This document shows positions 7,239 to 50,480 of a stretch of 64,000 bases of DNA, piece after piece (the stretch's first letter is position 1; every line of letters starts with the position of its first letter). The notes below the pieces were generated by a model. It saw only the letters and a list, made by a program, of their open reading frames with translations. It was not told the DNA's origin and did no database searches. The DNA is taken from positions 248,001-312,000 of the forward strand of contig NW_020844031.1 in assembly GCF_003704095.1 (NCBI RefSeq), in the 5' to 3' direction. Made by a program: the position numbers and the translations under genes. The stretch is from Pocillopora damicornis (taxonomy: Eukaryota).

Positions 7239-10226
7239 TTAACGGACATAAATCTTCCAAAAGTCGCCGCGCGTCAAATCGTTCCGATAGTCATCACATT
7301 CCCATCTGCCATGGCCTGGCCACGTGGCCCAATGACAGTAATTTGCAATGAATGCTGAGTACATATACAGCTCCTTATTCCCTTCATGTCCCCATTTTCC
7401 AACATGAAACACGCCGTTTTCCTTCCCCCATTCAACGCATTTACTTGCAAGGACTGAGTTGTCTCCCTTAAGTTTCTCAAATGAGCCACAGGCTTTGGGA
7501 AAAACGTCGGTATCACCGCCGAAAAACCCGACTACAGCTTCACCAGAGCTGTTCGCGGCCGTTTTGACATGAAACGTTCGTCCATGTTGCCGTTTACGGC
7601 AGTGGAATCTCAGCTGAGTGAAAGACATGCGGGATCTCAGCTCTCGCATACCGTCAGGAGAGAGAACCATTCTGTTGCTGCTGTAGCGACTGACTCCTGC
7701 ATATGTCTCTTCAATATTCAAATTGGTGGGGGGCACAGTTCCTCCAGCAATAACGTTATAGATTAGGAGCCAGCCTCCTGCCAAATATTAAAAAAAAAAT
7801 GTGAACCGCGTTTCTTCGGAGACCGGAAACAGCTCTTCCACGACTCACTGTTGTTTTCACAATAAAAAATGGGCTACTTCTAGGTATGTCTTTGCGCCAC
7901 GGCGCAAAGGCACGGTCTCTCCCTCCACCTACCGGCCTTATCGATTTAAAGAAGAAAAGATAGTAGAATGGTTTTGTTCGCTTGTTATAACCTCAACGGC
8001 TCCAGATTGAAACCATGCTTTAACCACAAACTGGAGTTTTTCGCTGTTTTTCAGCTCCTGCTACTCTGAAGGAGTCTTAAAAAAATCCTGCTGGTTTGGG
8101 TCCAGCATTTTGGAACTTTCACTTGAAATGCGGGCCACACCTTAAACTCCTACCCTAAAACAGATGTTTTTGTTTGTCTTCTTTTGTCTGTAGCATTCTT
8201 TGAATGTTTTTTTTCTGTATTTAATCATTATTCAGTATGCTTTGGTTTTTTTTTTTTTCTTCTCAGGTTCAAATACCACAAGTGTTTACCTCTGCAGCCT
8301 TGCTGTTCAATACACAGTCAAAATTGCGGAAAAGAGTTATTTGCAGTGCTTACCTCCATCAGTTGTCATGTCACAAAATACTTTTAAAGAACTTCCATTT
8401 TTCTCAGGGTCGATCCAGTACTCCCCGTCTCCTTTTGAGTCTCCAGCTTCCAAAATCTGCTTGCAGGACAGAGCAGGATGACGGGAAGACCAGCCAGGTA
8501 CAGCTGCGAATTTAAATATGTTTTATTTTTTAGTGTCATGGTTCAGGGTCAATTGCCAAATAATTTCGCTTTGAAGAATAGTTGTGCTATGTTTTTATCC
8601 ATTCGGACCATCTTGGTCGCGGATGGCTGTTCTTGGTCAGCAGAGTAATATAGACATGGAGGATGTGAGATATTTAGGACCATTTACTTATGCAGTCAAA
8701 CGTAAATTTCTTCTTGGTGTAGCTGTACCGAATGAGATGTGAATCACGACACACCCGTGTATGTGTTTCTGTCTGTTTCTGTTTTGGAAGTTGAAAACAT
8801 GGAGTGTTTCTCACGTGTTAGGCAGCCTTTCCCTTTGCGTCCTGGATGATAATGGCCGGAGTTTCTCGCTGCTTTCTCATCGTAAAAAACTTCGATGCAG
8901 GAAATCTACGTTGAAAAAGATTCGGAACATATTATACCGGTCAAATGTAATTATTAAACGTCTCCAAATGTTTAGTGAACAGTTTTAAAAATTTTTTCAA
9001 TTTTTTCGAAGTTTTTATGTACTTTGATGACGTTTCTATGTTCAAATAATCAAATATTGCAGTCACGGTTGCAGATTTCTAATAGTTAACTCCGATTCAT
9101 TTCTCTTTCAAGTTTAAAGTAACTAAATTATTTGAAAAGGAAATTTTGCACATTTCTCAGGAACTGAAGTATTTTCACTTCTAAGTTTCAATTGAATTGT
9201 ATTTTTTGGTAAACTTGCCGCTCATAAATAATTGAGAAACTCTTTCTAAAAATCAGAAGATAGATGGATGCAATGAGACAGAGAACTGACTCCAGTAAAC
9301 TTTGTTTAAACTTAACTCTTTCTGGACTTTTCAACGACAGGAATTAAGTTCCAATAAGCACCACTGATAAATCGATAAGCACGGAAAGTATATAGAAGAA
9401 ATTCCATCTAACCAGTTTCATTGTTTAACTGCAAAAATAATTCGTCGATTGATTTCCTCGCACGAAATAAATATCGATGACAAGGTAAACACTAAACACG
9501 AAGAAATCGTATTTTGTCATTCGAACTTTGTTGAAAAAGTTAAAAAAAAAACAAACAAACAAAAATATATATTTCCCATCGTATTTTTCCATTCGAACTT
9601 TCTTGAAAGAGCTAAAAAAACAAAAATATATGTATTTTCAGTAGTCAAAGAGCGAAAACGCGACTTCGTGAAACGGGAGTTGTCAAGATCGCCGATTAAT
9701 GAATTTAAGTATGAACCAAGAAAACGTAATTTAAAGGAATTCACGCAAACAACTGAACTTACCTGCACCAAACCGTAGTACGTAGATCCTCTCTTTCTTT
9801 TAAAATCAGCTGCTTTCATCAGTCGAGTTTTGTTGTTCAGCTCACAAATAACATCGTTTTCCTCCGGGTAAACGTTACACGATTTACAGCGGCTTTCCTT
9901 CTCAATACATTTCTCCTGGCATTCAAATTCGTTTTTAACAACACTCTTTTCCATGACATTACCAACAAGAATATGATCTAGGAGTTATGAGTACATGAAA
10001 ATCTCTTAAGAACTGGTGAATATCGCTACTGTTCTGTTTATGATTGTCTTACAAATGCAAATCGAAAGAAAAGGAATTCATTTTCTACGGGTTTTCTTTT
10101 TTTTCACTTACCAACTTGGGTTTCGAAGACGCGTCCGCATAAGTCAGAGTTTGCCATCACAGATAAAATCAGGCAGGAGATGATAAGAATTGTAAAGGCC
10201 AACTGAATCGGACCTGTATTAGCCAT
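7239..10226 (-). CDS. Secreted PAN/Apple + degenerate EGF + fibrinogen-N-like protein, copy B. Exons 10226-10112, 9977-9763, 8905-8815, 8503-8354, 7777-7239
   Basis: Same exon phases as copy A and nearly the same sizes (115/215/91/150/539). Signal peptide MANTGPIQLAFTILIISCLILSVMA. Intact frame ending DFWKIYVR*. Confidence 0.85.
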
Positions 10227-14532: not shown

Positions 14533-16200
14533 GGAACCCCATCCGTTATTTACTGGTTAACTTAGCTGTAGCAGACTTCATGTACGCTGCATTAATTGCT
14601 CCGAGCTCCCACTCTGACGGATTTATTGGCTCAGGTTTATACCAAGTTCTTACCGACTGCAATGTTGCATGGATGGGAGCCATATCCTCGATTGTAACTT
14701 TGGTTATTATCTCCATTGAGAGGCATTATGCAACTCTTTCTTCATTTGATAACAAAGGGAAATTTAGCGAGCGTAAACTGAAGGTATAATCTCAGTAATC
14801 ATCATTTCAATTGATCAAGAGGTTGTGGATCAATGTCAGTATCGGATCTACTGCCCACCTACCCCTCTCCTAACTCAACATTAACCCTAACTTGTAACCC
14901 AGTTGACTTTTGTTGGATTAAAGGAGGGGCAGGTGCGCAGCTGCGCTATGTTCGTATCCAGATCTCGCGTGGTCTCAAACCTTATGGAGCCTCCTTCATT
15001 TCGCGATTTTTAACAGTCACCAAAAAACGCGAAATTGAATACTAAGAAGGTAGCGTCGTTAGTTGATTTTTACTGGCCTTCTCGGATCACAGAAAATCCA
15101 GAAATATTTTGGAAAACAGCCAAGACAGTCAAGTCACAATTTTTTAATCTCCCTTGTGCAGCTCATGATTACAAGTATTTGGAACTTCTCACTGATTCTC
15201 ATTTTACTTCTGCTCCTTGTTTGAGCTTCATTGAAGGGAAAACCTCATGCGTTGACATCTGGCTGGAACAATGAATGCCCGAATATTAACTATTGGCGTG
15301 GGTGGCACTGGTCCTCATTACGTTGTCAGTTATGGTTGGGTTATACTCCAGAGTCACCTATACATTATGGCTGAAACGCGACACAGATTACCGACTCACC
15401 TTCCAACAAAAGGAAGAGCTGCATGTTCGTGTCGAAGTTTGGCAAGAAATTTCTTTCCCACATCTCATAAGTAAGTTCTGTTGCGTCATTTTGTGTAATG
15501 CGATGTCATTGATGAGAAGGGGAGTAAATGACAAAATGTTTACACTTGACTGTAAAAATGGTGAGTTTGTGGTGTTCAGATGAACGAATAAAATAAATGT
15601 ATAAATGACTAAAGGTAGCTGTTACTCCGGATGCTTCCATGCGGTGATTACCTTAACAAGAAAGCCTGAATGAGGATTACCAGTAAGGCTCTTACCTTTT
15701 TTTATCTCGACTTTACTCCATTCTGATATCATGTTTCTATTGACTCGATATGAGCAGATAAATAGACAAATAATTCAATTTTCTTGTTTGGTCTGTTTAC
15801 TCTGCAATAAGAAACGGTTACGCGTTTTCCTTAGCGAGAACGGACTGATTGAGCTCTTTCCCGATTTATTTCTTAAACAAAAGTTTACGATCTTGCCCTC
15901 CATTCTCGCTCCACAGGGTGTCATTAAGGGGCGAAAACGAATTACCTTGATGGTCGTGGCTGTAAGTGTAACATTTGCAATATGCTGGGGCACGAATCAA
16001 ATTGACTACGCTATGATGTACGTAGCATCCTGCGACATTGATAAAGTTCCCGTTGCCATTTGTAACATAATGGTCTTGTCTAATTTTGCCGTAAACGTGC
16101 TTGTATATCTCTCTCTTTAACCAACACTTCAGAGAGAATATGAATGCAACAACATGCTTCAGTAGCCTACCATCTAACAGGATTTACCCCGCTGATAATC
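14533..16200 (+). pseudogene. Class A (rhodopsin-like) GPCR pseudogene, about 3 exon relics (14533-14783, ~15130-15410, 15917-~16200)
   Basis: TM2 LLVNLAVADF, TM3 IISIERHYA, TM6 VTFAICWG, degenerate TM7 NFAVNVLVY. In-frame TGA/TAA near 15272-15290 and a frameshift at ~16115. Confidence 0.75.
14827..14960. mobile_element. Degenerate palindromic MITE in the GPCR intron, same family as 53256-53390
   Basis: ggatcaatgtcagtatc...ctgcccacctacccctctcctaac...ttaaaggaggggcaggtgcgcag. Confidence 0.6.
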
Positions 16201-22000: not shown

Positions 22001-22390
22001 AACTAGTGGTCTCTGTTTGAAATGATGTACTGAACGGTGTGCGACGAGGATAGCTTGTCTCCCATGGAAGGTAGCACACAGTCTGCCGAAAGCTCACTAT
22101 CATTTAAAGATTTGTAGAGTGAGGGAACAGTTGACATAAAGTGCAATTTAAACTGCAGTATTTAGAAACCGTTACTATTTGATTTCATTAGAGCCAGACA
22201 AGTTTCCCAAAACTCAGTGTTGTTGGGCATCTTGTTGGGAATGCTCACATGTTTTTTTCCAGTGTGAAGAATAATGGGCATTGCCAGTGTCATCTGTTTA
22301 GGTTTCTTCTGCTTTGTTCACATTTAGGATGGTGTCAACTGGCTGGCATTTCTCAACCGTTACAAGCGGCATGGTATTCTATGCGATGAT
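19100..22390 (+). pseudogene. BTAF1: BTAF1/Mot1 (TBP-associated SNF2 ATPase) internal genomic fragment, intron-containing and degenerate
   Basis: KLLELCMTREPCPNARIIKNLCSF; IQQRGAEFSLVKLANNFGGLLPSKLPKLWETVVGPL (19966-20118); SGIPDPPGMSKATVEQKQKERKFLEQLLDSKKVENYTIPVPIKAELRKYQQ (21792-21944); DGVNWLAFLNRYKRHGILCDD (22328-22390). Homology stops just before MGLGKT, and in-frame stops are present. Confidence 0.85.
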
Positions 22391-23050
22391 ATCCTTCATT
22401 ACTTTTCCTTTTAAAACTTCGGCCCAAATTATTTGTGTACATAAATCGTCATTCTCAAAATTAATGGAATCGGAATAGCTCCGTCTGTTTTCTGGATTCG
22501 ATTTGTACCCTAACACTGATATCAGTAATAGGACCTAGTAAAACTCTTCAGTCTATTTGTATCATAGCAGGTTTTCACCATGCAAAAGCTACAGTAAACA
22601 AGGTACAGTATTCGACTCTCAGACGAAGAATCCAGTCTGGATAAAGATTGAAGTTGTCTTTTCCTTCTGGTTTCCTCTTTAACGATAAATTTCACTCGCC
22701 TCACGGGCTCGTGCAATTTTTTAGCCTTTGAGCAGTTCATCCGTGCTACTTTATCCCAAATTGTACTCGAAATCTTGTGATCTTTCTGTGAAAATCTATA
22801 ATTTATGCAATTATTTAGTGATAAATGTATGTTAAGAACATAAAAAAAATAATGCTTTTACAGCGTTTAAGCGTTCACTATTGACATTGTCTATGTCTAC
22901 CCTGTGTCTTTGAGCTTTCGAATATATTTTACAAAACTAGAATTATTACTCAATGTCTTCTTAACCATAAAAAAGGCAGATATGACAGTTTTTTCCAAAA
23001 TATACATTTGACGGTTCTCATCGGCGTCTGTGACGTGATTTTCACTTAGA

Positions 23051-26000
23051 TTAATAGAGGACTTCACATGTTGGTGTCTTTAATGCTTGACGTAGACTGG
23101 CAACACCGACAGCGGTGATCTGATTATTTTGCAGATCAAGTGTGGTGACTTTACATGTTGGTTTATTTAATACATTACATAGACTGGCAACACCAGCATC
23201 GGTGATCTGATTAAAATTCAGATAAATTGCGGTGACTTTACACGTTGGTGTCTGTAATGCTTCACAAAGACTGGCAACACCAGCATCGGTGATCTTATTA
23301 TATTCCAGATAAAGTTCGGTGACTTTACATGTTGGTTTCTTTAATGCATTACATAGACTGGCAACACCGGTATCGGTGATCTGATTAGAATTCAGATAAA
23401 TTGCGGTGACTTTACACGTTGGTGTCTGTAATGCTTGAGAGAGAGTGGCAACACCGGCATCGGTGATCTGATTTTTTTCCAGACAAAATTCGGTGACTTT
23501 ACAGGTTGGTGTCTGTAATGCTTGACATAAACTGGTAACACCGGTATCGGTGATCTTAATATCACACAGACTGAATCCGGTGACTTCACATGTTCGTGTC
23601 TGTAATGCTCCACATAGACTGGCAACACCGTCATCGGTGATCTCATTTCCACTTAGAAAAAGTTTGGTGACTTTGCTTGTTTGTCTCTGTAATTCTTGAG
23701 ATAGACTGGCAACACCGGTATCGGTGATCCTATTATTATCCAGACTGAGTTCGGTGACGTTACATGTTGGTGTCTGTAATGCTTTACATAGACTGGTAAC
23801 ACCGGCATTAGTGATCAGATTCTCATTTAGATAAAGTTTGATGACTTTAGATGTTTCTGTTTGTAATGCTTCACTTAAACTGGCAACACCAGTATCAGTG
23901 ATCACATTATGATTTAGATAAAGTTCGCTGACTTTACATGCTGGTTTCTGTAATGCTTGAGACAAACTTGCAACACCGACATCAGTGATGTGATCATCTT
24001 CCAGCCTAAGTTCGGTGACTTTACATGATGATGTCTCTAATGCTTTACATAGCCTGGCAACACCGGCATCGGTGATAGGATTATCTCCCAGACTAAGTTT
24101 GGTGACTTTACATGTTGGTGTCTGTAATGCTTCTTGTAGCCTGGCAACACCGGCATCAGTGATCTGATTAGAATCCAGATGAAGTCTAGTGACTTTACAT
24201 GTTGATGTCTGTAATGCTTTACAAAGAAAGGCAACACCAGCATCAGCGATCTGATTAACACTTAAAAAAAGTTCGGTGATTTTACTTGTTGGTGTCTGTA
24301 ATGCTCGACAAAGACTAAAAACACCGGCATCAGTGATCTCATTGACATCTAGATAAAGTGTGCTGACTTTATTTGTTGGTTTCTGTAATGCTTGAGATAG
24401 ACTGGCAACATCGGCATCGGTGACCTTCCGATCTTTCAGAAGAAGTTTGGTGCGGCTACTCCGTTTAGATTCGTTCTCTGCTTTGAGTGCATCAAAATTA
24501 TTTGATGCAAAAGACACAGCAGCAGCGTCTAAGTAGGCAAATTATTATAGGTTAAATTATTTCATTTTTAATAATATGCATTGGCTGAGAACACGTCAGT
24601 TAATCCCAAACAGTGCACAAAGTTGAGATTGAGGACAAAAAGTTGAAATTTAGTATAGAAAGATGAAAATAATTTGATTGCCAGGAGAGTCACGACACGA
24701 AAAAAAAGACTGCCAGGGAGCCATGACACGAAAAAAGACTTTTAAAGAGGAAAACAGAGTCATATTTTTGTTAGTATATTATTAACAAGTAATCGCATGA
24801 TTTTCCTCGTGCGATTCGGTATAAATCAATATTTGTGAATTTTTCAAAAACTACAAATCGCACTCGCCCTACAGGCTCGTGTAATTTTTTCGTATTTCAA
24901 ATGTTTACTCGTGCTTTTTAATCCTAAATTGCACTCGAAATCATGTGATTACCGACTCTAACCGACCCATTTCGGGAGCGAATCCAGGAATTTGTGGTAC
25001 GAGAGGAACTAACTTTGACTCAGAAACACATATTTTTCGTTGTTGTTTATGCTGGAGATTAGGTAAGACCTAAGTACAGTTAGGGGAGAGAATGCGTCCT
25101 ATCGTCTGCAGTTCATTAAGAATTTTAGCTTTTCTGCGTCTTTTTCTTTTAACGAACCCGACCATGTAAATACTGTTAAGACTTACCGCAGTTTTTTGGT
25201 GCAAATAATCTTTGTAGGGAATCTATTTCAGTTATGAATTCTCTTTACTCCCCGCATGAGGGAAAAAAATGAAAATAAAAAACTAGCTTATCACCCAAAA
25301 AAAGCTTAGAAAAGACAATATCTGGTCTTTTTCCAATCTTGGGTCCAATAGGAAGGGGCAGTTCCAGTGGAAGATATTTCTCCGAGTTTGAGCTATTTTT
25401 AAAGGTAGGCATTTCATAATACTGAAATGAACTGACTGTTAAATTGCTTACTTCCCTCTTACGAGAGGCCCTTCCATCTTCCTCTTCAAGTTACTTTTCT
25501 CATGAAAGATCAAAAGGCCGTTGCACAGATTTTACCGTTAATACACAATACCTTTTTCTCCTGCTTTAAATTTCTTTGCAGGATTAACAATTGCTTCCTT
25601 TAATTCATCCAGGTCTTTACCAAACTGCTTTGTCATTTCATCCAATCTTTCTTTGACGCTGACTTCATCCATCACCCACTGTTTAAGAAGCTCTTTATAG
25701 TTTTCTTCGAGTTCAGGTTCCATGCTTTCCTTTTTCAGATTCTCAATAGCACTTTGGTAACCAGCTCCTCCCAGTCTCACCAATGCATCTTGGATGTCCT
25801 GCCAGTATTGATTGAAGGTTGTATTATCAACAGAGGCCGTTTTAGCATGACTATTAACTTGGTTTTTGTAGAACGCGATGCGCGCAATGTCTGCCTCAAG
25901 TGTTATGTCTTCTGCTGGAGGAAGTTTATTCCAGCCGGTGACTGGATCACGAAGGTCACAAATGTTCCTCAGCAAGACCGTTAACAGGGAGATGTCGAAA

Positions 26001-26263
26001 TCCTCAGTTGAAACTAAAGACTTGCCGCCAGGATACAGTTTGGCCCATTGTGGAACAGTGAGTATTTTTTTTTCGTATCGGAGTGTTTGTAGCTTTCGAT
26101 AAATCCAATCTTTTGACAAAACTTCGTGCAGATTTCCTGCGGGACGCTTCTTTTCAAATATCACTCTCAAGACTTGTGTACCCACATCCACCAGAAGGCG
26201 ACACAACCGAGCATAATTAACCGTCTGCTCTGTAGAAGGGAACGTTGGTGCAGCAGTTGCCAT
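23051..26263 (-). CDS. HEPN (DZIP3/hRUL138-like) + helical linker + 16 RI-type LRR protein with no NACHT. Exons 26263-25552 and 24528-23051
   Basis: Exon 1 has NYARLCRLLVDVGTQVLR...QWAKLYP...DFDISLLTVLLRNIC...GW...DIARI, the HEPN_DZIP3 pattern. Phase-1 donor AAAG|gtattg joins acceptor ctacttag|AC in frame. Exon 2 has 16 x 29-aa repeats of LxLxxNxITDxGVxxLxxAL. Confidence 0.85.
23060..24451 (-). repeat. Coding tandem array of 16 x 87-bp LRR units
   Basis: Recurring ggtgtctgtaatgc...actggcaacacc...tcggtgatc...gtgactttaca with 87-nt period. Confidence 0.95.
24789..24952. mobile_element. MITE with imperfect TIRs in the HEPN-LRR intron; partial relative at ~22690-22785
   Basis: gtaatcgcatgatttt...gtgcgatt pairs with aattgcactcgaaatcatgtgattac. 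Confidence 0.55.
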
Positions 26264-29000
26264 GGATGATGGCTGCTAGAAAGAAGTGATAGCACCGTAA
26301 GAGTGAAATAAGATAAAGATAAATTTAAAAATTAATCAAAGATCCAGCTGTGTTGCTCATGAAACTATGACTAGGGCAATAATTTTATTGTTTATTAATA
26401 ATTTTTCGGTAGAACATATCGTTTATTACTTAAAGATGCTCTTAAAAAGTAGATATTTATCTCCATCCACTCAGCACAATTACCGATGTGTCGTTAGCCA
26501 TTGACGATTTTTAGATTTTTTATCTTAGCCATTACGTAATGGAAGGGAAAGGGAGAAGGTAATGCGCAGGCGCGATTGGGGGGCGTAACTTGCATACCCC
26601 ATTAGTGTGCGCCAGGAGACACCGGAAGATGACAATGAAGTGCACCTACGCGAGTGTCGAGCTTCAGTGCAGCGTACTGCGGGAATACGTTTAGGCACTA
26701 CATGAGAGATTCACGTGGGCCAGTAGATGTGAAGGCGCGTAAGCAAATAATTTGCAACCCGTGTTTTGAGCGGGAAATCAAACTGGTGAGATTGTAGTTG
26801 AACAGTAATTCTCAGTATTCTACAATTTCTAATAAACTCGCAGAGCAACAATACCGGCGGGGTTAGAGCTTTGTCAGCGGGAGGAAACTGTTAAAATTCA
26901 AGTTCGTGGAGAGAGAGTTTTGAGTGAAAACAGGCCGAAAAGAAAGAGACAGAGCGACCAAAAAAATCAAGAAGTGAAAGGCGTCAGGCGAGTCGAGAAA
27001 AACGCGCAAGAAAGTACAAGAGGACACCAAAATAGGTAGCATACGGCGAGAGGAACGAGAAAAACAAGAAAAGGCATAAGTAAAAAGGCGAATATCAAGT
27101 GAAGAGCAACGCGAGAAGGAAATACAAAGACGCTCCCGAAAACAGACTAAAAAGGGGTCATTTAAAAAGAGAAGCAAACTACAAAGGATCCGGGAAAGAA
27201 GACGAGGTAAGTCGTGTCTTATCTGGGTTTTCTCTTACGCTAAGGCTCAGAAAAATTGAAACCTTTTTTACCAATCGTCGTTTGATACTAGCTTCAGTCT
27301 ATAATTAAAATCATTTTTCGGGAAAACAATGACTTTGGCATTCATTGCCTAAAAACCCTCGCGTCGGTTCATTGCTCCAATAAGATTTCAAAATGTTCGT
27401 ATTCTTGAATTACGGTCTTTTCGTCCAAAAGTTTTTTTCTCCAAGTCTGTTCGTCTTATTGTTAAGTCTTTTCTCGAAGCAAATAAATAACTTTTAGAAG
27501 ACTAGATAACATACATAAAGAACTTATAAGTGCGAGCCATCGCCACTTTGGTAGAAGTAAATTTCGTGTTGGACTATGTTTTTGGTTGTGTCGGAAACAA
27601 ACTCACGGGCAAAATGGAGGTAGTCCTACTGCGGAAGGAGTGAATTTCATTGTTTAGTCATGGCACTTTTCAGCACTATGTTTTCATGCTTTCTACTCGA
27701 TTCGTTCGAACTTCAGGAAATGGTTTGTCTCACGAAACATAAAGCCACTTTCTCTGCGCTCAACATCTCGAGTACTTACTGCGCGGGTTAAGATGAACAT
27801 GCTTGCGATACGATCATTTTTTCCTAATTCTGGACACTGAAGAATCAGTCTCTGAGATTGATAGTCATCACCTTTTGGAACAAGCCTCCGAGCTGTGATT
27901 GTGCAATTAAACGGGGTTCTGGCAATTTGAGCTCACAAGTACGTTGGTAGGCACATGGTTAGCGAGAATAATTGTTCTCTACAGTTTTCGAATTCAAGAA
28001 CCGTTTTTAAGAGTCCGTTTCTGTAAACTTCCTGGATATTTTCTGATCAATTCATCGAGGCACCATCTCGGAATTTCATAAGAGATTATTAACGATAAAT
28101 TCGTATCGGCACCATAATTTAGGGAAGTTTTGTCAACACATTATCAGTTAACAATTCGTGAACCACTTCTGTAACCTGCGTGGATATTTTCTTTTGAATT
28201 GAGTCACACTCTTGGAATTTCATCAGTAATTAGGAACGATAAATCTGTATATGTAGCACATTTTAAACTTTCCATACGATTTTAGGAAACTATACTTAAT
28301 TGACTCTCGTTAAATTGGCCTTGCATGACTCGTTGATTATTTTATTATTTTGTTTCCCAAAAAGCCCGGCTCGTGACTCTGGAGGTACTGAACTTGTTAC
28401 ATTTGATTCACAAGGCACGCTTCAAGGAGGAAGGTTGGAACAAAATAGCTTTTAAGACCGTTTATTGCACCCGGTTTACATATGTAGATAATTTCTTTAA
28501 AAAAATACCTATTACAGCTGTATTCAGAAGCATAGACATGTAGGTAATATACTTCTGCTTTATTTTTATTGTAAGGGGCTTCTTTTTATGTAACATATAT
28601 CCATTCTTTTAATTTCCTTCTTAACCTGCCTGCCAATAATTAAATTCTATGTTTTAATTCAAATGCGAGAAGATAAAACAGAAGTGTTGCACAGTTCTCT
28701 TTCCAGCGTCTTTTATATCTTTGTGTGCCAGCTAATGATTTAAATCTCTGTGAATAGATATGCCATATTTTAGTAGTTTTTTTAAATTCCATCTTTAGGT
28801 TTTTGACATTTACTTTTTTTAAAATTCACAAATGGCATTCTCTTTTCATCCATGTTAAGAGATATTACATATTTCTTTACTTAAAATCTGAATCACGAAA
28901 TCAACTTAATTTCATTGTTCATAAGAACACTTTGCTGGAGTATGTTACATTATTTTATTTGCTATCTTTCTGGTACATACGATAACCATATGTGTCTTAA

Positions 29001-29202
29001 CCCTTTAACTCTCAAGATTTCACGAGTAATTCTCCTTACTGTCTGCCATACAATTTGTGGTGTAAGTTTTGAGAATTTGTGATGGAATTGACTAATAATC
29101 CCCTAATTGATGTTTTTCTTTATTCTCATTTCTTGTCTGCTTGATATTGTGCTGATAATGTAAGGAGAAATTCTGTCTAGGTCGCTAGTGGGACTAAAAG
29201 GG
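29001..29202. mobile_element. piggyBac-type ~200 bp MITE
   Basis: TTAA-CCCTTTAACTC...AAAGGG-TCAA, with internal sequence shared with the other copies. Confidence 0.7.
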
Positions 29203-29734
29203 TCAAAATGGGGGATTTCATGATATTGTAATGATTAACACTTTATTATGATTTCAAATGTAACAAAAAAAGGTGAAGAGAATCTGATGTTATGAAACAG
29301 TGAAAAAACCTGTTGCTGGTAGCTTATGTCTTTAATGTTTAAATGTTAATGAGAAATGCTTTTCTTTGAAAGCGAGTATTCAGAAGTTTTCAAAACTGAT
29401 AAAAATAAGCTATTTACAAGTACATGTAATGAAAAGCAAACTGACAATCATTCCTTAATGTTTGACATGCTTCACTCAAGAATGTCAGTTGTGTGTACCT
29501 ACAATTGTGGAGGCGTATTTGAAAAGATTTGTTGGCGTAGCTGTTGTTCTTTGTTAATCTTTGTAACCAAAAAAGCTACTAAAGGCACTGAAATTCAATC
29601 TTTATGTTCACAAGGCACCCTCCAAGGTGGGAGAATATGATGATGTTTACTAGGCACTTGCTCTTATAACAATTTTATGTTCCAGAAATTCTCTACAAAT
29701 ACAAAACGGATTACATGAGATGTCTTTCATGCTT

Positions 29735-29935
29735 TACACCCTAACATCAGTATGCATATTCTTCATACTATTCTCTATACATTTCCTAATGTGCTGGCAG
29801 GGAGAATTTATTTAACAAACAAAAGGTTCTTCAGTTGATTGTCATTTCCTTTATTCTCATGACCTTAATGTTTAATTCAGAGATGATATTAAAAGGAGAA
29901 ATTAGATGCTAGTCACTCTCAGGGATTAAAGTGTT
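29735..29935. mobile_element. Diverged relative of the ~200 bp MITE family
   Basis: Shares ggagaatt...ctttattctcat...ggagaaatt...agtcact...ttaaag with the other copies. Confidence 0.5.
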
Positions 29936-29989
29936 CATAACTGTACATACTTTATATGCTCCTCACATTTGTTGGCAACAATAGTTTAG

Positions 29990-30450
29990 GTTAAGAAAGA
30001 TGTTTTTCGTCTTGTCACGAGCGTAGGACGAAGAAAAAATTCTGAGTCCCCATGAGGAATCGAACCTCAGACCTTCAGATTTGCGCTCCAATGCTCTACC
30101 ACAGAGCCACTGAGACTCTACCGTGAGCGAGGTCTACTACGAAGTTGATATGACACGCTTCCTGCATACTGCTAGGATCAGCGATGTCGATGGTGTAATG
30201 TTTGAAGATAGAAATAGTAGAGATGGTGAGTTTTGAGATCGGTAAAGAATTAAGAAAGATGTTTTCCGTTTTGACACGAGCGTGGCACAAAGAAAACATG
30301 CTGAGTCCCCATGAGGAATTGAACCTCAGACCTTCGGATTTATGGTCAGAATTTTTTCTTTGTCCTACACTCGTGACAAGACAAAAAACATCTTTCTTAA
30401 TTCTTTACCGAGCTCAAAACTTACCATCTCTACTATTTCTATCTACAAAT
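29990..30450 (-). mobile_element. Compound tRNA-derived SINE-like repeat (tandem plus inverted pieces)
   Basis: Minus strand gtggctctgtggtagagca (A box) ... ggttcgattcc (B box) at ~30050-30110. Repeated at ~30250-30340, inverted at ~30345-30450, and another copy at ~49135-49250. Confidence 0.65.
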
Positions 30451-31072
30451 AGTTAAGGTTGTTAGGAAAGCAAACAAACAAATGAACAGAAGACAGTGAA
30501 ATGAGGGAAACTGTCAACTTTACCATATGATCGAAGAAACATCACAGAATACTTACGAAGGGAAACTTGGATTATGCTAGCTAATTTCCTCTATTGCCCT
30601 TCATGTATTGATCCAATAAAATTTAATCAGTTATAGAGTTTGCCTGCAATGTGTTAAATTACCAGTGTGGACTTGATTCTTCTCAAATGTCAACTGGTAA
30701 AAGATAGATACTAAGAATAGACGTCCATAAGAAAAAGTACACATCGAAAAAACCACACTGAAGTGGTGGGATGATTGATTTGTGATATTTAGAATGACAG
30801 AAGTAGGAAAAACATATTGAGCTTTTTCCTATTCCCTGTATGTTAATTAGATTTTGGATTCTTCATTTAAACTGGGTGAGATTAAATTAATTCATAGTCT
30901 TCATTAGGGTTTGTTTACATGGAAAGGTGATTGTTATTATAACTTCACAGATGTTTTGGTTGTGGTTGCTATCCCAATTGACATTCATAAAAAAGTTCCA
31001 TTTAACATAGAATGTTTCAAGAACTTTTTCCTTTCTCTTTGATACCATTTACTATTTCTGGAGCACAATTAA

Positions 31073-31276
31073 CCCTTTAAATCCAAAGATCTCAATAGTA
31101 ATTCTCCTAACTGTCTGCCATACAGTTCTTATGATGTTAATTTTGAGAATTTGATATTGGATCAACTAATCATCCCCTAATTAATATTTTTCTTTATTCT
31201 CATCACTAATCTGCTTGATATTGTATTGATATTGTAAGGAAAAATTCTGTCTCCGTAAATCATGGAAGTTAAAGGG
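31073..31276. mobile_element. piggyBac-type MITE
   Basis: TTAA-CCCTTTAA...TTAAAGGG-TTAA. Confidence 0.8.
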
Positions 31277-32329
31277 TTAAAGGAAGCAGGTTATTAGAAA
31301 AATTATAATTTTTCATTCAGGCAATTATTTGAATGTGTAAGTAACATTTGATATTTTCAAATGTGACAGGATGGTCAAGCTGAAGATAGCCTTAAAAAGG
31401 AGTGAACTCCACTGTAACAATTAGGTGACTAATTTGGAAACTTGAGCACTTGGTAAATACACCTTGGCTTGCAATTCTAATGATTAAAGTTTGCTGAGGC
31501 AATTGAAATGTCATTCCACATGCAGGAACCTTCCACACAAAGACCTGTACTGTGAGTCATATGCTATGAGATAACTTTAGAAAAATGCATTTGTGTCAGT
31601 AGAAGTATTGCAAGTACAGTACCACCTAGTGACAAAAATTAATGATTTCCTGTAAGCATGAACGTTTGGGAGTAGTTATGGTGGCGATTGACCCTTTTTT
31701 TTGCTAGGATGCATGGGGTCTGATGATTGTAGTGTATATCTTTTAGCTTTCAAACTTTCAGCTTTGTATTAATTGTAACTGTTTACCATATCTATATTTC
31801 CCTGTTCTTTGAACCCTCAAGAGTTGAAGCAGGTGAGTCAGTAACCTAACTTCATTTGTTTGTAATTGTCTGATTATATAATTTTGCTGTGTAGGCTATC
31901 ACATTGTAATATGTAATATTGTTGTTTAGATTGCATTAAATACTCTTGCTCAAGCTTTCANNNNNNNNNNGTGTTTCTTACCAATACTCATACCCAAACT
32001 AAACATTTACATAAGGAATTGGTCACAAGATATGCAAGTTTTAAAGGGTGAGAATCTGGAAAAACAAGGATCCTCCNNNNNNNNNNACTGAAATTAATGG
32101 GGGCCCTCCTATTCTAATTTGTGTTTTTACTTTGACTTGCCTCCTCCCTTGAAATGTTTAGGGCACATAGATGAAGAGAACATTTTTCGTATTTTGACAC
32201 ACGAAAGTTAAATTAATTGACATCCACATAATGCACAAAGCAAGAATATAACTGCCTTTAAGCTTTATAGGTTAAAAAAAGCAAAATAAGAGAGTTGTGC
32301 AGACCATATCTTACTTTTTATCCTCCTGC

Positions 32330-33560
32330 ATTAGTTCGGATACAAGTAATTCATAGGACTCAAACATTGTCATCTCCTTTAAGTCATCAGTTGTAAGATT
32401 TGCTTCTGTTAGATTTTGCTTTGGAAAAAAATTTACTTTGTCCTAAAATTCTCTTCCAATATACAATATTATAAGCTCAGTAAGCAAATCGAGGGTGAGA
32501 AGCAAACCTATTTGTTCATTTCCCATCTATATTTTCTGCAAACTTGATTAGATGTTTGAGCCTCTCAGGAAATGATTTTGTTGAATTATTTGAGATATCA
32601 GAAAGAACTGCAATATTTGTTTGGTCACCTTTTCTACCAGGAAAAAGAGTTGGAAAGCCATTGGTGCTAAGAATTGTACATTGAATTCACTTAACGGTTC
32701 ACTGCCAACAGTCCAATTGTGAGTTTCAGGTTGCTTGAGGAACTCATCTTCAATAATTTGTCTTTCTTTTTAGGTGTCAACATTTGCACGTATAAAGCTA
32801 CCCATATCACTCTCTGTATTGTAGACTTTTTCATTCTCATCAAAATCAATTGGTCCACTGTCTATGTCCATATTTGNNNNNNNNNNATCATTATCTTCTA
32901 TTCCACATTCTACTTTTGACACATTAAGGAGAACACCATTTTCTGGTGGTTTAGCAAGGTTTTGCTCGCTAATCTTAGCATCTTTGTACAAGAAATTATT
33001 TGGCTCCCATGTTTGTTGACACCTGTAAGCCAGTTTTTGCATTCTCATCAAAATCAACTGGTCCACTGTCTATGTCCATATTTGNNNNNNNNNNATCATT
33101 ATCTTCTATTCCACATTCTACGTTTGACACATTAAGGAGAACACCATTTCCTGACAAAAAAATCTTGGAACAATTGTCTTTTCCATTCACAGTAAATATT
33201 ATAACAGGTATGTCCTTAGGACATCAAGGCATTACATCTGCAAGCTGTTGCACATCTTGGGGCAAAGTTGTAACATGCCCTTTGTATGCTCTTTGTCCAC
33301 CTCCTTGCTTTGTATACACATGCATCACAGGAAAAGCTCTTGCAATCAACATTTCTTCAAACTGTGTTAAATCTTGTAATTCCTCAGGAACTGGTGAAGG
33401 TATATCATGAAATTTTCATTCAAAAACTTTTTCTTCAGTGAGCAAGTTATAATAATTGGGGCAAGTTTGGGGTGTTTCAAGTTTGACACAAGATTTGAAA
33501 TGTCTTCTCTTCTTAATGGGTATCTAAGTGAAATCAATGCTAGCTTCAGTATGCTCATTA
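32330..33560 (-). mobile_element. Degenerate Helitron/Helentron RepHel N-terminal region
   Basis: Minus-strand fragments [70 protein letters not shown] and [31 protein letters not shown] resemble the region upstream of Rep in animal Helitron proteins. Stops, frameshifts and an internal ~110-bp duplication are present. Confidence 0.7.
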
Positions 33561-33599
33561 TCTAGTTCATATGACTGAGATTCACAAACCATACCTCTT

Positions 33600-34820
33600 A
33601 CTTCATATATTGTGAAAAACCATCCTTGTACAAAGTGGTTTTTTTAATGTAGCCAAATTAGAAAACTCTCTTACATCTGGACAAAGATGAATATAGGTCC
33701 ATTTTCCTTCAAAGAGAACCATACAAGTAAAACGTTTATTATATGATTGCACCATCCCTTTCAACTTGTATTCCATTTGGCCTACATTTACATTTTCATA
33801 CAACTTTATTGCATTCATAAGCACTGGAGAGAATTCAATAAAAACAAACTTTGAGTGTGCTACAGAAGTCAAAATTGGCTCACACGTTGGGGTTTCACAA
33901 TTAGGGCAGTTTAACTTTCCAGGTTGAGTTAGAATAGCAGAAACAAACTGTGGCCAGGAATTGTAATTCAGCTCACATTTTTGCAATGCAGATATGGTCA
34001 CAAAATTTACCAAATTGAGCTATTTTGAACTACATCCTTTTGGCATGACTCACAAAATGACTGGAAGGTTCTTAGAGATGAAAGGTACTCATTTCATCTG
34101 GAGTAAGCTTGCCAAAGGTCTTTTCCTCAAAAATCTGACAGAAACAAGCATTGCTATCTCTTGCCAAAAAAGGGCATTGTGGTCTAAAATACGCCCAAAG
34201 AGGCTCCCTGATTTCTTCCAACAATCTACTGTTTTCTGGTGACTCGATATATCTTGAGCATGTGTTAAAAAGAAGCTCTGTGAATTCATTTCTCACAGTC
34301 AAATTTAACAATTGTGGGAAAAAAACATGATGCAACTTCTAAAAACTGTCAACTGCACCAGAATAAATATGACAGGTGTTTCGTACAGAATTCATAAAAT
34401 ATCCTGTTTGAGCAATAACTGCTGGAGTTATTCATCTTCCATTGAGCTACTGTAAACTAAGGAATCTGTTACTTCAAAAAATGTGTTGCTTAATTCATAT
34501 ACTGTGAAAACCATACTTGCTTCAACTGTTTTTTCAGTGCAGCCAAATTGGAAAACTCTTTTACACCTGAACAAAATTCATCAATATAGGTCATTTTCCT
34601 TCAATGAGAACCACACAAGTAAAATGTTTAATACATAACTGCACCATCCCTTTCAACTTGTATTCTGTTTGGCCTACATTTACATTTTCATACAACTTAA
34701 TCACATTCATAGGCTCTGGAGAGAATTCACTAAAAACAAACTCTGAGTGTGCTACGGAAGTTAAAATTAGCTCACTCATAGGGATTTCACAATTAAGGCA
34801 GTTTAACTTTCCAGGTGTGG
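33600..34820 (-). pseudogene. Relic of a USP-like (papain-fold) cysteine protease domain, partly duplicated (33600-33925 ~ 34490-34815), probably part of the Helitron
   Basis: Frameshifted GAVDSFLEV Cys-box-like motif, CPNC, and YKLKGMV...HFTCVVLIEGK His-box-like segment. Same strand as, and upstream of, the RepHel relic. Confidence 0.45.
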
Positions 34821-35041
34821 CAAAAACAAACACGACGTAGAATTATCTGGAAACATTTTCTATTTTACAATGCTTGTATAAATATTGTATACAGCCACCC
34901 CAAGTTAGAGTTCATTCATATTTCCAAATTGGAAATTATAGCAAATTCCAAATAGAAATCAAATATTAAGAGAAAAAGAAAAATAGAAAAGAAAAAGAGG
35001 AAGCTATAATACATGTGGATGGAATGTCTGCAACCATTTAA

Positions 35042-35245
35042 CCCTTTAACTCCCATGAGTGACCAAGACAGAATTTCTCCTAACAATATAAATACAGTAT
35101 CAACCAGATAGGTGATGAGAATAAAGAAAAGTATTAATTAGTGGATTATCAGTTAATCCAATACNNNNNNNNNNAAACTAACATCACTAGAACTATGTGG
35201 CAGACAGTTAGGAGAATTACTAATGAAATCTTGGGAGTTAAAGGG
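35042..35245. mobile_element. piggyBac-type MITE with demonstrable TTAA target-site duplication
   Basis: Perfect TIR ccctttaactccca / tgggagttaaaggg, flanked by TTAA on both sides. The paralogous empty site has a single TTAA at 43886-43889. Confidence 0.9.
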
Positions 35246-35444
35246 TTAAATACTCCAATTGTTTCCCACTCATGAAGAAAAAAAAAGATTTACATGTAGC
35301 CACAGTTTCAAGTTTATTTCACTATCAATGGCTAAATTGGTTGTATCTATCTAATAAAAATCAATAAATACAAAAAATCAAGCCATAAAACACAACTGCC
35401 ACACCTTCAATCGACATGTATATGTTATAAAATAGAGTTTTAAC

Positions 35445-35652
35445 TTTAACCCCATACATGCATAACTGACCAAGACAGAATTTCACCTTACAACATCAGT
35501 ACAATATCAGCAAGCAAGTGATGAGAATAAAGAAAAGTATTAACTGGGAGATTATTGGCTAATCCAATACAAAATTTTAAAACCAACTATGTAAGGACTG
35601 TATGGCAGAAGGTAAGGAGAAATAGGTAAACAATCTTGGAGTGAAAGGGTTA
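35445..35652. mobile_element. piggyBac-type MITE, paralogous to 43468-43685
   Basis: Same family and same intronic position in both U2AF2 copies. Confidence 0.7.
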
Positions 35653-38297
35653 CAAGTCTAATGAACTACAGCTATAATTATACAGAACACACCTCTGTTA
35701 TGCCAAAACAACATATAATCTACGAACCTGTCTTGTCATCTGACTTCCTTGCGGTAAACTGCTGACAGTGTCCCCTGGGACTGGATCCCCTGCATCAACT
35801 GGCATCTGGCTAGCAGCTATTTCGTTTGACAAAAAATAAACAAAAACTTTCAAAAGATGACCTAGACAATACCAAACACCATAAGTGGTCACTGAAATTT
35901 GACATACTGTAAAACCTGCATTTAAGATGCAAATGCAGATAAGCTTCACTACGAGTTAAGCGACTTGAATTTTTTAAAACAATTCTTTGAAAAGAAATAA
36001 ACAAAATCACGAGTCAAGTCTGGAGAAAGTTGCTTTATTTTGGCTGCTTCATTGAACATACACGTGTATTCTGTGACTAATATTGAAAACAGAGAATATT
36101 TTGAATCCTTACCTACAATTTGAGCTATAGTAGTATGGACAACAAATCTAAACACCAACCTAGACTTACTGTGTATGTTTGATCTTACTCTGGTATTGTT
36201 CCACTGGTATTTTTCACACCTCTTGTCACATTCACAAAAGAGTTATTCATAAAACAACAGTTAATTTTTAGCAGAGCTCATGTAGTTAGTTCATTGGATC
36301 TAATGCAATAATTTAGAAATCAGTAACAATTGTTCAATTGAAGTGTAACTTTACCGCTCGTAGCCTGCTGTTGTGCTAATTGCTCAGATCTGATTGGAGG
36401 CCTGTTCTGTGAGCTTTCCCTTCAAAAGAAAATATACATGTAAGATACATTATACCAGGAACAAAATCAAAAAGAGTACACAACAAACTATACAGCCTTG
36501 GAAATGAATGAAAATCAATATGGAACTTATGTNNNNNNNNNNACACTTGGTATACCTGTAACACTAGAAAAATTAACTCTTTGATTCTTACCTCTTTCTC
36601 CTTCTCCGTGGTGATGAGCGGGACCTAAAAAGAAAAATTAAAAGCATATAAATTCTGTTAACCCTTTAACTCCCATGAGTGACCAAGACAGAATTTCTCC
36701 TTACAATATCCATACTCATGACTCTTTGATTCTTACCTCTTTCTCCTTCTCCGTGATGAGGGGGACCTAGAAAGAGAAATTAAAAGCATATAAATTCTGT
36801 TAATAATTAATTTTGCCAAAAAAATAAGCAAATTTATCATTCAGAACTCTTGTCAAACTTCACAAAGCAGTGGGCTCACATTTTTTATGAAATTGAAAAG
36901 CAAAAGGCTTCTTCACAATTACAAAGAAATGGACATCAAATTATTTAGAATCCAAGTACATCCCTTAAAAAAGAGTATTCGACATCACCTGTATCTCTTT
37001 CGATATCTGTCCCTTCCATCACCAAAGTTTCTCCTGTCTCCGTTGGGACTCCTTGATCTTGACCTGGACCTGCGCCGTCGATCTCTGCCTCTATCACCTC
37101 TATCTCTTGAGCGGTCACCTAGAAAATAATAAAAGTATAAAAGGTACCATTAAAATAGATGGAATTCCATCATTAACATAACAAAAAGTGCTCATTAGGA
37201 TAGTGGAAGATTATACCACCTTCTGGCTGATACGGGGTTGTCAAAAAGATTTTGAGTAACCATACTTTGATACAGAGTAGGTGGTTCTTATCAGTTCTAC
37301 TTCCATCAATGTCATGTTTTCATGCTGAAAATTGTACAACAAGTATTCTGAATGGCCTTTTTGTTATTTAGAGTAAATGGTAAAATGCACAATGGTAAAA
37401 TGCACGAGACAACAACACAGTGATAGATACAGGAACACAAGACACAAAATGGCACTAAAATACAAAGCTTTTACTTCACTATTTCATCATGCTTTTCATT
37501 ATTCTTCTTTATTTCCACTGCTTAGCTATGGTATAAAATTCCTCACTGGGGCATTATAAAGAGTATCTATAGCAGATGAGCATACCACAATCAATTACAT
37601 ATGTAAATGTATGTATGATTCCTAAATCCTTCATGTGTGCATCATTGAAATACCTGTAGCTGGAATTCTGAAGGTATAGGAGAAAAAAATACTTCTTCAA
37701 ATTCCAACTCATCTACAAATATACCACCCTTCGGTGTGTTACTTTAGTTTAAAGAGATCCTGAAATTATCTACTCATCATCTCAACAGTGTAAACGAAGA
37801 CAGTTTCAAATTCTAACAAGAAAATTGAAATATAAAAGAAATACAAGAGTAAAGAAGAGTTTAAGTTTATCAGATGATCTAATAATTCAATTGTAACATG
37901 ATTTACAACTACATGAAAGCGAGCTCATACACAAAACGCTTATAACTGCATTATTAAAATGAATATATATATAGCAACCTTAAACGATCGATCACCGCTA
38001 GAACTTGTTATGTTATTCAGTCTTCAATAGATTTTCAGCAAAACTACCCAATCAGATTTACTGCACGTTTACCATTTTGACACGCCGAACTTAAGAGCGA
38101 TTTTACCAAATATTTATAGAAAGGTGATCGACACTACAATTCAAACTGTCAGGTCAGTATGGATTTCTCAGTTCAATTTGCGGCAAAATCTCTGCACAGC
38201 CCAATACTCCTAATTCCAAAATGGCGGCCATCCGAGGTGAGCTGGGCCGAGAACACATAAGCGAGGCATCAAGGGCTACTCTCATCGAGCTAGAGAA

Positions 38298-39453
38298 TGG
38301 CGTCTTTCGACAACATGTCGTTGTACGGTCCTTAGTTTTTAACTGAAGAGGATATCCCTGGAAGCTCTTTAAATGGAAGAGATCCTAGTCAATTGAAAAA
38401 TTCGGAGTTAAAGTTTTGGCTCCAATGTCGGGGTGATAGTTGCAAAGGGTTGTCCACAAAAGCGCAACTTTGCAAACGGTAAGAAATCTTTTGGGTTTGT
38501 GGCTTGAAAACAATGGTTGTTATGGCCTTGCAGCTCATAGGGTTTGTTCTCTTTCAGAGTGAAGGACTATGTACAAGCAGGTGTTTCTCATCTGCTTGTA
38601 GATCCCGATGATAATTTCATCTACATGAAGCATAAAGGCAATAGACTTTCGAGTGGGAACGAAAGAAATGAACTCACTGAGTCAAACTTGTGTGCACTTG
38701 AAAACGTCAAGAACGTGGCTTTTCCCGTGAACAGCTGGAGCACGTCGCTGGCTAAAAGCCCCATTTTACCCGAGCAGAAATAGACAGACATATGAGTAAC
38801 TCAGGAAAGAAGTATCGAAACATCGGACATCATTCACTACCATCAGGACTGAACAAAGCCAAGGCATTTCTGGAAGATGAATATTTACACGAAATACAAA
38901 CTCACTGTGATCAAAGATATTTCTATTTCTGCGCAAAGTGCTTTCACAGTTTTAAGGTCCATGAGACACCACACAATTTAAAGCTTGCTTTGTGTATTGT
39001 GTCTGGAGACGTGGAGTATGCCCACTGTGGACCAAGTTGTGCTGCTGGGAAATCAGGCTTTTGCAACCACATTTTGGCTCTGATGATGAAGATATGTAAA
39101 TACTCTTTATATGACTGCAAAGATGTTCGGGACCTGAAGGACAAGGAAGATGAAAATCCAAGCAAAGTGTGTACTTCAGCATTACAGAATTGGCACAGAT
39201 CAAGAATGGATGATGTGAGTTCGCAACCTGTCATGCAAGTTGTTGTTTCCAATCCTGTTAATAGAGCTGAGAAGGCAGGGCACGGAGGCAAGAAGACTGG
39301 AGTGACCTGCCTCTTGACTGAAGCAAGTAGAGGGAGAAGTAATCAGAAAGAAAAACTGAAGGACTTGGTGAAGTCTCTCGAAGAACATAGTCCTAAACTT
39401 GGCATAATTCAAGTTGTTGATACCACAAGTGTTGATGCATTACCTGCTATTAG
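38298..39453 (+). pseudogene. SAP-like + SWIM zinc-finger gene relic, probably the accessory (SWIM/YqaJ) ORF of an ISL2EU/Harbinger-related DNA transposon
   Basis: LTEEDIPGSSLNGRDPSQLKNSELKFWLQCRG...KAQLCKR|intron|VKDYV; SWIM motif HCGPSCAAGKSGFCNHILAL. TAG near 38335 and a frameshift near 38765. It ends before any nuclease domain. Confidence 0.6.
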
Positions 39454-39849
39454 GTGTATAATTCATTATGTATTCATATATGGACTTTATTATTTAATAA
39501 ATCACCAACAAGATGTGCATGCATAATGAAGTATGGGGCTGTGTGGAAATTTTTACTGATTTTCCATGCATTTGTTCAAAAATGCTCCCTTACCGTAATC
39601 TTCTTGGCCATCGCGGTCATTGTCGTATTTCTTGCGAAATCCAGCGCCGTCTCCTTCTGCCATATTTGTCTGAAAACTTAAATACTTTTTCTGTTATTCT
39701 AGAAAATTATCCAAGGCACAAGAAAAAGTTTGAGGAATGTTTAAAGCTGAATTCATGAAATAGCTTTACGTTTCAGCATTATTAAGCTTAGCTTTCAGCT
39801 GAGGTGTTTTATGTTTTGAACAACAGTTCAAAACGTGACATAAGCGTTA

Positions 39850-42472: not shown

Positions 42473-42521
42473 GGAGTTAAAGGGTTAACAGAATTTATAT
42501 GCTTTTAATTTTTCTTTTTAG

Positions 42522-50480
<7,959 letters not shown>

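Follow-up and report, generated by a model that had tools for sequence, protein, structure and literature searches.

Can a coral gene assembled from the parts of a NOD-like receptor (NLR) dispense with the NACHT module, and if so, what could its product still do? The question is raised by a locus in a stretch of 64,000 nucleotides (nt) of the Pocillopora damicornis genome (NCBI RefSeq assembly GCF_003704095.1, contig NW_020844031.1, positions 248,001 to 312,000 of the forward strand; G000:C666:248001-312000 in our numbering of a 234-Mb genome in 4393 contigs), hereafter the window, in which an earlier note made from the letters alone had described a HEPN_DZIP3-like exon joined directly to an exon of leucine-rich repeats (LRRs). 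Among the N-terminal domains that accompany NACHT in P. damicornis and other anthozoans, HEPN_DZIP3 is the most frequent (Emery et al. 2021, PMC8260672; Noel et al. 2023, PMC10236652). As far as can be read from sequence, the locus descends from the coral HEPN_DZIP3-NACHT-LRR receptor family, has lost NACHT and is expressed. Its C-terminal LRRs are of the ribonuclease inhibitor (RI)/NLR class and it descends from an NLR gene, while the NACHT domain with Walker A and B motifs that belongs to an NLR is missing. We predict, with slightly more confidence than doubt, that its product is an NLR-derived, NTPase-free, weakly catalytic or non-catalytic protein that works by binding, as a modulator or decoy of full-length HEPN-NLRs.

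Both coding exons lie on the minus strand, with an open reading frame (ORF) for the HEPN part at 25538-26263 (241 amino acids, aa) and one for the LRR part at 23051-24517 (488 aa). The exons were searched separately and were joined only for codon numbering and variant classing. The HEPN exon (25552..26272), assigned from Pfam and an AlphaFold2 (AF2) model, has its ATG at 26263 and encodes HEPN_DZIP3 followed by a long C-terminal helix. The LRR exon (23051..24528), delimited by its ORF, Pfam and repeat analysis, encodes a 33-aa linker and 16 repeats of 29 aa (87 nt) and ends in a stop codon at 23051-23053; it matches LRR_6 with an E-value of 5e-50 and contains 15.7 copies of the 87-nt unit. Between them lies a GT..AG intron of 1023 nt (24529..25551), with the donor GT at 25551/25550 and the acceptor AG at 24530/24529, and splicing in phase 1 rebuilds an Asp codon from the G of the HEPN exon and the AC of the LRR exon. 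The spliced coding sequence (CDS) is 2190 nt long, or 729 codons and a stop, in agreement with the intact gene of about 730 codons, spliced in frame to one LRR exon, that had been proposed. The intron is also as it had been described, without a long ORF or a Walker A motif: it contains no ORF of 60 aa or more, and tblastn with five paralog NACHT exons (E up to 10) found no NACHT remnant in the whole window and no Walker A in the intron. Likewise, no NACHT domain match was found in the window ORFs with Pfam, or in C666:271-275 kb in a genome-wide scan with PF05729. The one revision concerns the span of the gene, for which 23051-26263 had been given; both exons are found there, but the gene is larger and has one or more additional 5' exons, of which one lies at about 35728-35816 (-).

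Evidence for transcription comes from contigs of three polyA RNA runs of two studies, X1 (study P1) and X2 and X3 (study P2). The exact joint of 24528 to 25552, for which confirmation in RNA-seq had been asked, is present in contigs of all three runs, with 28, 94 and 104 nt on the shorter side; the 1023 nt that it skips begin with CT and end with AC in plus-strand reading, GT..AG in the direction of the gene. Word depth in the intron is about 10-fold below that of the exons, and the intron is nonetheless contiguously covered by RNA-run contigs (for example, 24501-25401). In addition, an independent Tara Pacific metagenome scaffold (L033), which runs colinear with window 32283-19539, shows the identical 1023-nt intron without a NACHT exon and encodes the identical 241-aa ORF, with no difference from the window in the HEPN exon, none in the intron and one in the LRR exon. 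An assembly artefact, in which a NACHT exon has been collapsed out of the intron of a normal HEPN-NACHT-LRR gene, might be feared in a repetitive family with a fragmented assembly and many N runs in the paralog loci, but it has a negligible chance of being true and is for practical purposes already refuted by the direct joint in mature polyA RNA of three runs, the RNA-run contigs that span the intron as assembled, the identical intron on the Tara scaffold and a window free of N runs around this gene. Since the junction is transcribed and no NACHT exon lies in the intron in two independent data sets, neither of the outcomes that the earlier note had named as fatal to its gene, a NACHT exon hidden in the intron or an untranscribed and neutrally evolving locus, has come about.

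The descent of the gene can be followed through its paralogs. In genome-wide profile scans, HEPN_DZIP3 and NACHT were each matched about 90 times. Canonical paralogs of the subfamily consist of a HEPN exon of ~250 aa, an intron of about 1 kb and a single NACHT+LRR exon of 830-951 aa, as seen at C1045:445-449 kb, at C4069:10.4-13.3 kb and, 40 kb away on the same contig, in the neighbour at C666:313-317 kb. The HEPN exon of the window is 60-67% identical to those of the paralogs, with the same donor and phase. Window 24713-25551, in the intron, is 80-84% identical to intron 1 of several canonical paralogs, and 24546-24695 matches a segment that in C1569 precedes the canonical acceptor by about 240 nt. 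Residues 2-491 of the LRR exon and residues 462-951 of the NACHT-LRR exon of C4069 align without a gap, at identities of 61% (aa) and 80.7% (nt), such that the LRR exon corresponds to the 3' 490 codons of a canonical NACHT+LRR exon.

In the breakpoint alignments, homology to the canonical intron ends at ~24547 and homology to the canonical NACHT-LRR exon starts at 24540 (codon ~457), which leaves the deletion junction at 24541..24546 (-). On these alignments, the event is a deletion of about 1.6 kb that took the 3' end of the intron (~240 nt) and, from exon 2, the initial ~450 codons, with the whole NACHT module included. The new AG acceptor lies 10 nt inside former coding sequence, where the canonical ..tGGACt.. 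reads ..TTAGAC.. in the window, the AG being made by a silent Leu change (CTG>TTA before GAC); because canonical junctions are also in phase 1, the reading frame is preserved. When set beside the anthozoan HEPN_DZIP3-NACHT-LRR NLRs (PMC8260672, PMC10236652, PMC3710099), the gene shares their HEPN domain, donor and phase, a homologous intron and colinear LRRs, and differs from them by the loss of the NACHT/helical module (about 450 codons), the new acceptor, an Arg-to-Lys change in the Rx5H motif of the HEPN domain and a 5' exon derived from U2AF2. To judge by this comparison, it is no new kind of system but a new derivative that arose by deletion within a known family.

The junction recurs at a second locus. 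The sister locus at C1045:492.2-492.8 kb (L007, G000:C1045:488000-495591, junction at 4209-4815 of L007) aligns without a break across the window's intron/LRR-exon boundary (24695-24111) at 79.6% identity; N runs interrupt the locus, and it has GT where the window has its AG acceptor. The sister HEPN has the lowest synonymous divergence (dS) to the window HEPN, 0.25 over 136 codons. As the junction is shared with a copy that is about 20% diverged, the NACHT-less state is old. A locus at C3068 was considered as another NACHT-less copy and rejected, its 496-aa frame containing pre-LRR sequence and adjoining a gap.

What the protein does depends first on its HEPN domain. The match to HEPN_DZIP3 (PF18738) is strong (E 7e-55; 185 bits against a curated cut-off of 27; profile positions 2-144 of 144) and the AF2 model of the exon has a pLDDT of 84.8. 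Foldseek found nothing in the PDB for this model at E up to 0.001, and the top VIA matches, HEPN domains of Csm6, AbiF, Cas13, AF_0298, Swt1 and sacsin at Z 5.8-7.9, are below threshold and in the noise range for helical bundles. The catalytic motif is reported as "mostly conserved" in the HEPN_DZIP3 family (Anantharaman et al. 2013, PMC3710099). We aligned it to 29 paralog copies and to 157 HEPN stretches from the 150 best public cluster representatives, and at codon 133 (25865..25867, minus strand) the Arg of the Rx5H motif is replaced by Lys in the window, which reads YKNQVNSH against YRNTVYGH in paralogs. The Arg of Rx4-6H is present in 29/29 paralog copies and 136/157 public stretches, with Lys in 4/157, and the basic residue three positions upstream is Lys in 29/29 paralog copies and basic in 141/157 public stretches; the window has R133K and K130A. 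In its wider form, the motif is K-x-(Y/F/C/L)-R-N-x3-4-H in all 29 paralog copies and A-F-Y-K-N-Q-V-N-S-H in the window, which keeps N134 and H139 and lacks the Rx4-6H catalytic motif of HEPN RNases. We infer from this that the HEPN domain folds but that its catalysis is impaired or altered, and that it is probably a weak RNase or none. The original reading of the exon as a HEPN effector thus fares poorly, and with the key catalytic arginine lost, a regulator or decoy becomes likelier than a stand-alone RNA-cutting sensor.

Constraint on the two exons was compared through nonsynonymous divergence (dN), dS and their ratio, omega. For the HEPN exon, omega against paralogs is 0.4-0.65, or ~0.5 on the window branch as computed from those distances, and dN is 0.21-0.29 between window and paralogs versus 0.08-0.19 among paralogs, about 0.1 higher on the window HEPN. 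For the LRR exon compared with that of C4069, omega at the concave face (the five x positions of xLxLxxNx) is 3.09 versus 0.78 at scaffold codons, and the structural L and V are kept in 15/15 full repeats. The RNA contigs and the Tara scaffold are free of stops and frameshifts; the sole exonic indel in RNA contigs is of 3 nt, and indels in intron and untranslated regions (UTRs) are of 1 nt. The Tara scaffold, with one CDS difference only, is of no use for dN/dS. In a simulation in which indels were ignored, the probability that no stop arises in 729 codons was 0.013 at 5% and 0.0004 at 10% neutral divergence. With an open frame at a shared and old junction, an omega split within the LRRs, a HEPN omega of ~0.5 and conserved L and V residues, these patterns favour a maintained, fast-evolving coding gene rather than a decaying relic.

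One function that such a gene could have is that of an autonomous two-part sensor-effector, in which ligand binding by the LRRs directly releases or dimerises an active HEPN RNase with no NTPase involved. This would be in keeping with the intact, expressed HEPN-LRR frame, the retention of N134 and H139 with a HEPN omega below 1, and the fast evolution of the LRR concave face, as in ligand-binding receptors. HEPN_DZIP3 is also found beside repeat domains without an NTPase among public relatives (P0132, P0142, P0209, P0139, P0122), which include HEPN-B-box-filamin-NHL and TRADD-N-HEPN-ankyrin proteins and one protein with three HEPN_DZIP3 domains. As in the window gene, HEPN_DZIP3 adjoins a repeat-type binding domain directly and a STAND NTPase is absent in the first two of these and in DZIP3 (table in PMC3710099); their binding domains, however, are NHL, ankyrin or TPR and not NLR-type LRRs, and they are not recent NLR deletion derivatives. 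The search for other HEPN-LRR proteins without NACHT, which had been recommended, was made and found no LRR without NACHT among the 150 best public relatives of the HEPN exon. A word search with the LRR exon gave a best match of 65% identity and no match with PF18738, most of the entries being single-exon ORF calls from which the architecture is not readable.

It had further been suggested that LRRs of the ribonuclease-inhibitor class might inhibit the HEPN domain in cis. Nothing supports this idea: the same LRR class is found in every canonical NACHT-containing paralog, and its presence therefore gives no hint of a special RNase-inhibitor relationship. RNH1-type LRR proteins have the same LRR_6 class of 28-29-residue repeats, but this resemblance is common to all NLR LRRs, and nothing points to this LRR binding its own HEPN. 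RNH1 targets enzymes of the RNase A fold, which is unlike that of HEPN. With a Lys at an Arg position that is invariant in the paralogs, an Ala at the second conserved basic residue, faster amino-acid change on this HEPN than on those of its paralogs, no comparable protein among the public relatives and LRRs of the ordinary class, we regard the autonomous sensor-effector as quite improbable.

The alternative in the earlier note that fits the data best is a putative decoy or regulator, and its mechanism can be proposed as follows. A deletion of ~1.6 kb removed the NACHT module from a canonical HEPN-NACHT-LRR gene, and a silent Leu change supplied an AG acceptor in phase with the HEPN donor, so that the mRNA reads HEPN-linker-16 LRRs. 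As the NTPase is missing, no nucleotide-driven oligomerisation would be expected, and the altered Rx5H motif would leave weak or no RNase activity. The protein would then act by binding, either to ligands via the diversifying LRR face or to full-length relatives via HEPN or LRR contacts, and would serve as a modulator (decoy or competitor) of full-length HEPN-NLRs in the manner of PYD-only, CARD-only and truncated plant NLR proteins. Mammalian PYD-only and CARD-only proteins, and in plants TIR-only, TN and TX proteins and truncated helper NLRs, are NTPase-free products of NLR families that modulate full-length relatives via competing domain contacts. They may provide a working model for the HEPN-LRR protein, which is likewise an NLR-family product without an NTPase, with the difference that they are usually reduced to the N-terminal signalling domain, while the HEPN-LRR protein keeps the signalling domain and the LRR sensor.

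Several points weigh against a maintained modulator of this kind. With Lys instead of Arg, the domain might still be partly active, and a complex prediction for the window HEPN with the C3314 paralog HEPN, which we count as evidence neither way, scored 0.01. The HEPN nucleotide tree is star-like and does not recover a clade of window and C1045. Through gene conversion, intact paralogs could keep the frame open and could make the junction look older than it is, and the pairwise omega contrast could reflect selection on the paralog lineage. Taken alone, omega over the whole LRR exon (1.17 against C4069 and 1.38 against C1045) also fits relaxed constraint, as do the variants listed from RNA contigs (28 nonsynonymous, 3 synonymous).

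Given gene conversion and the lineage ambiguity, the gene may yet be a transcribed relic, that is, a truncated NLR copy downstream of an active (U2AF2-derived or bidirectional) promoter, with a chance acceptor and no selected function. The NLR clusters of this genome are rich in fragments, conserved residues of the HEPN motif have been lost, the sister copy at C1045 is without the AG acceptor, and among annotated proteins in the 268-854 aa range, the word search turned up none identical to the LRR exon; the whole-exon omega of 1 or more and the excess of nonsynonymous variants would also be expected of a relic. Against this, the 729-codon frame is open although its junction is shared with a ~20% diverged copy (P about 4e-4 to 1e-2 under neutrality), the difference between scaffold and concave-face omega is not expected from neutral decay, and the HEPN omega of about 0.5, the L and V residues intact in all full repeats and the lack of any frameshift or stop in RNA contigs or the Tara scaffold all argue for constraint. 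On balance, we consider a relic unlikely, if less so than the sensor-effector.

A further reading, which we hold doubtful, is that an NTPase-free HEPN-LRR protein has long been kept by selection in pocilloporids, either as a dominant-negative or ligand sponge for HEPN-NLRs or as a receptor that signals without nucleotide-driven oligomerisation, and with a duplicated U2AF2 exon exapted as its expression unit. As surveys of cnidarian immune receptors define NLRs by NACHT, the gene is invisible to them. Its base-level breakpoints show how an expanded NLR cluster yields an expressed NTPase-free derivative, through a deletion, a silent acceptor change and a borrowed 5' exon. If functional, the protein would be a candidate negative regulator in coral innate immunity, and the gene would offer a natural means to test whether HEPN-NLRs can signal without the NTPase and the catalytic arginine; if a relic, it shows how fast copies arise and decay in NLR clusters.

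The borrowed 5' exon was identified from the same RNA contigs and from the arms of an inverted repeat. Contigs of X1, X2 and X3 depart from the HEPN exon at 26275, and the letters beyond match 35731-35757 exactly. Three letters fit both sides, and the true junction therefore runs from ...GACAG, followed by gt, at 35728 to CCATC, preceded by ag, at 26272. This gives a first intron of about 9.45 kb (26273..35727, minus strand, GT..AG) and a 5' exon at 35728..35816 (-), an inverted partial copy of a U2AF2 exon that may extend upstream to at least 35846. The exon lies in one arm of an inverted duplication of ~2 kb (about 34839-36803 versus 42473-44114) in which one U2AF2 exon and flanking intron were copied; the other arm holds the genuine plus-strand U2AF2 exon, and the remainder of the gene follows downstream on the plus strand (exons about 43282-49700). 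We take this plus-strand gene to be U2AF2 from its RRM1, RRM2 and UHM peptide motifs. In the duplicate, the donor GT of the 5' exon arose by GCT>GTT. Read in the U2AF2 frame, the 5' exon continues in phase to the HEPN ATG. ATGs in this frame occur at 35805 and 35739, the closest stop upstream is at 35958, and an upstream in-frame ATG may add 29 N-terminal residues, for a protein of 758 aa instead of 729. The U2AF2 gene and the 5' exon of the HEPN-LRR gene stand head-to-head, and this arrangement suggests that a promoter region near 35.9-36.9 kb is shared or bidirectional. Between the arms of the duplication, near the 5' part of U2AF2, lies a 244-aa ORF (38792-39526, plus strand) with a Cys/His-rich patch and no Pfam match.

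At the other end of the gene, the 3' UTR (22300..23050, minus strand) is covered by RNA contigs at exon-like depth and reaches at least 22300. Within it, 141 nt (22390-22530) are swapped for four letters (CATG) in all three RNA runs; the resulting 141-nt "joint" at 22389/22531 was tried as an intron and rejected, its TA..TA ends and replaced letters marking an indel polymorphism. Joints inside the LRR array, seen in RNA and DNA contigs and taking out a net 609 and 870 nt (7 and 10 repeat units), were likewise set aside as isoforms and taken as repeat collapse in short-read contigs. The 1023-nt intron contains a palindromic repeat of ~195 nt resembling a miniature inverted-repeat transposable element (MITE) at 24760..24953, of which dozens of copies, 80-84% identical and on both strands, occur on many contigs. 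The Tara scaffold differs from the window by two substitutions in the 6.7 kb of gene body and downstream sequence (26263-19539) and by 1.47% over the 6 kb upstream (32283-26273), with a sharp haplotype boundary near the acceptor of the HEPN exon. Elsewhere in the window, ORFs at 9517-9954 (-) and 15731-16120 (+) give weak Pfam matches to PAN_1 (E 2e-4) and to the C-terminal part of 7tm_1 (E 5e-4), respectively, and are probably exons of other genes.

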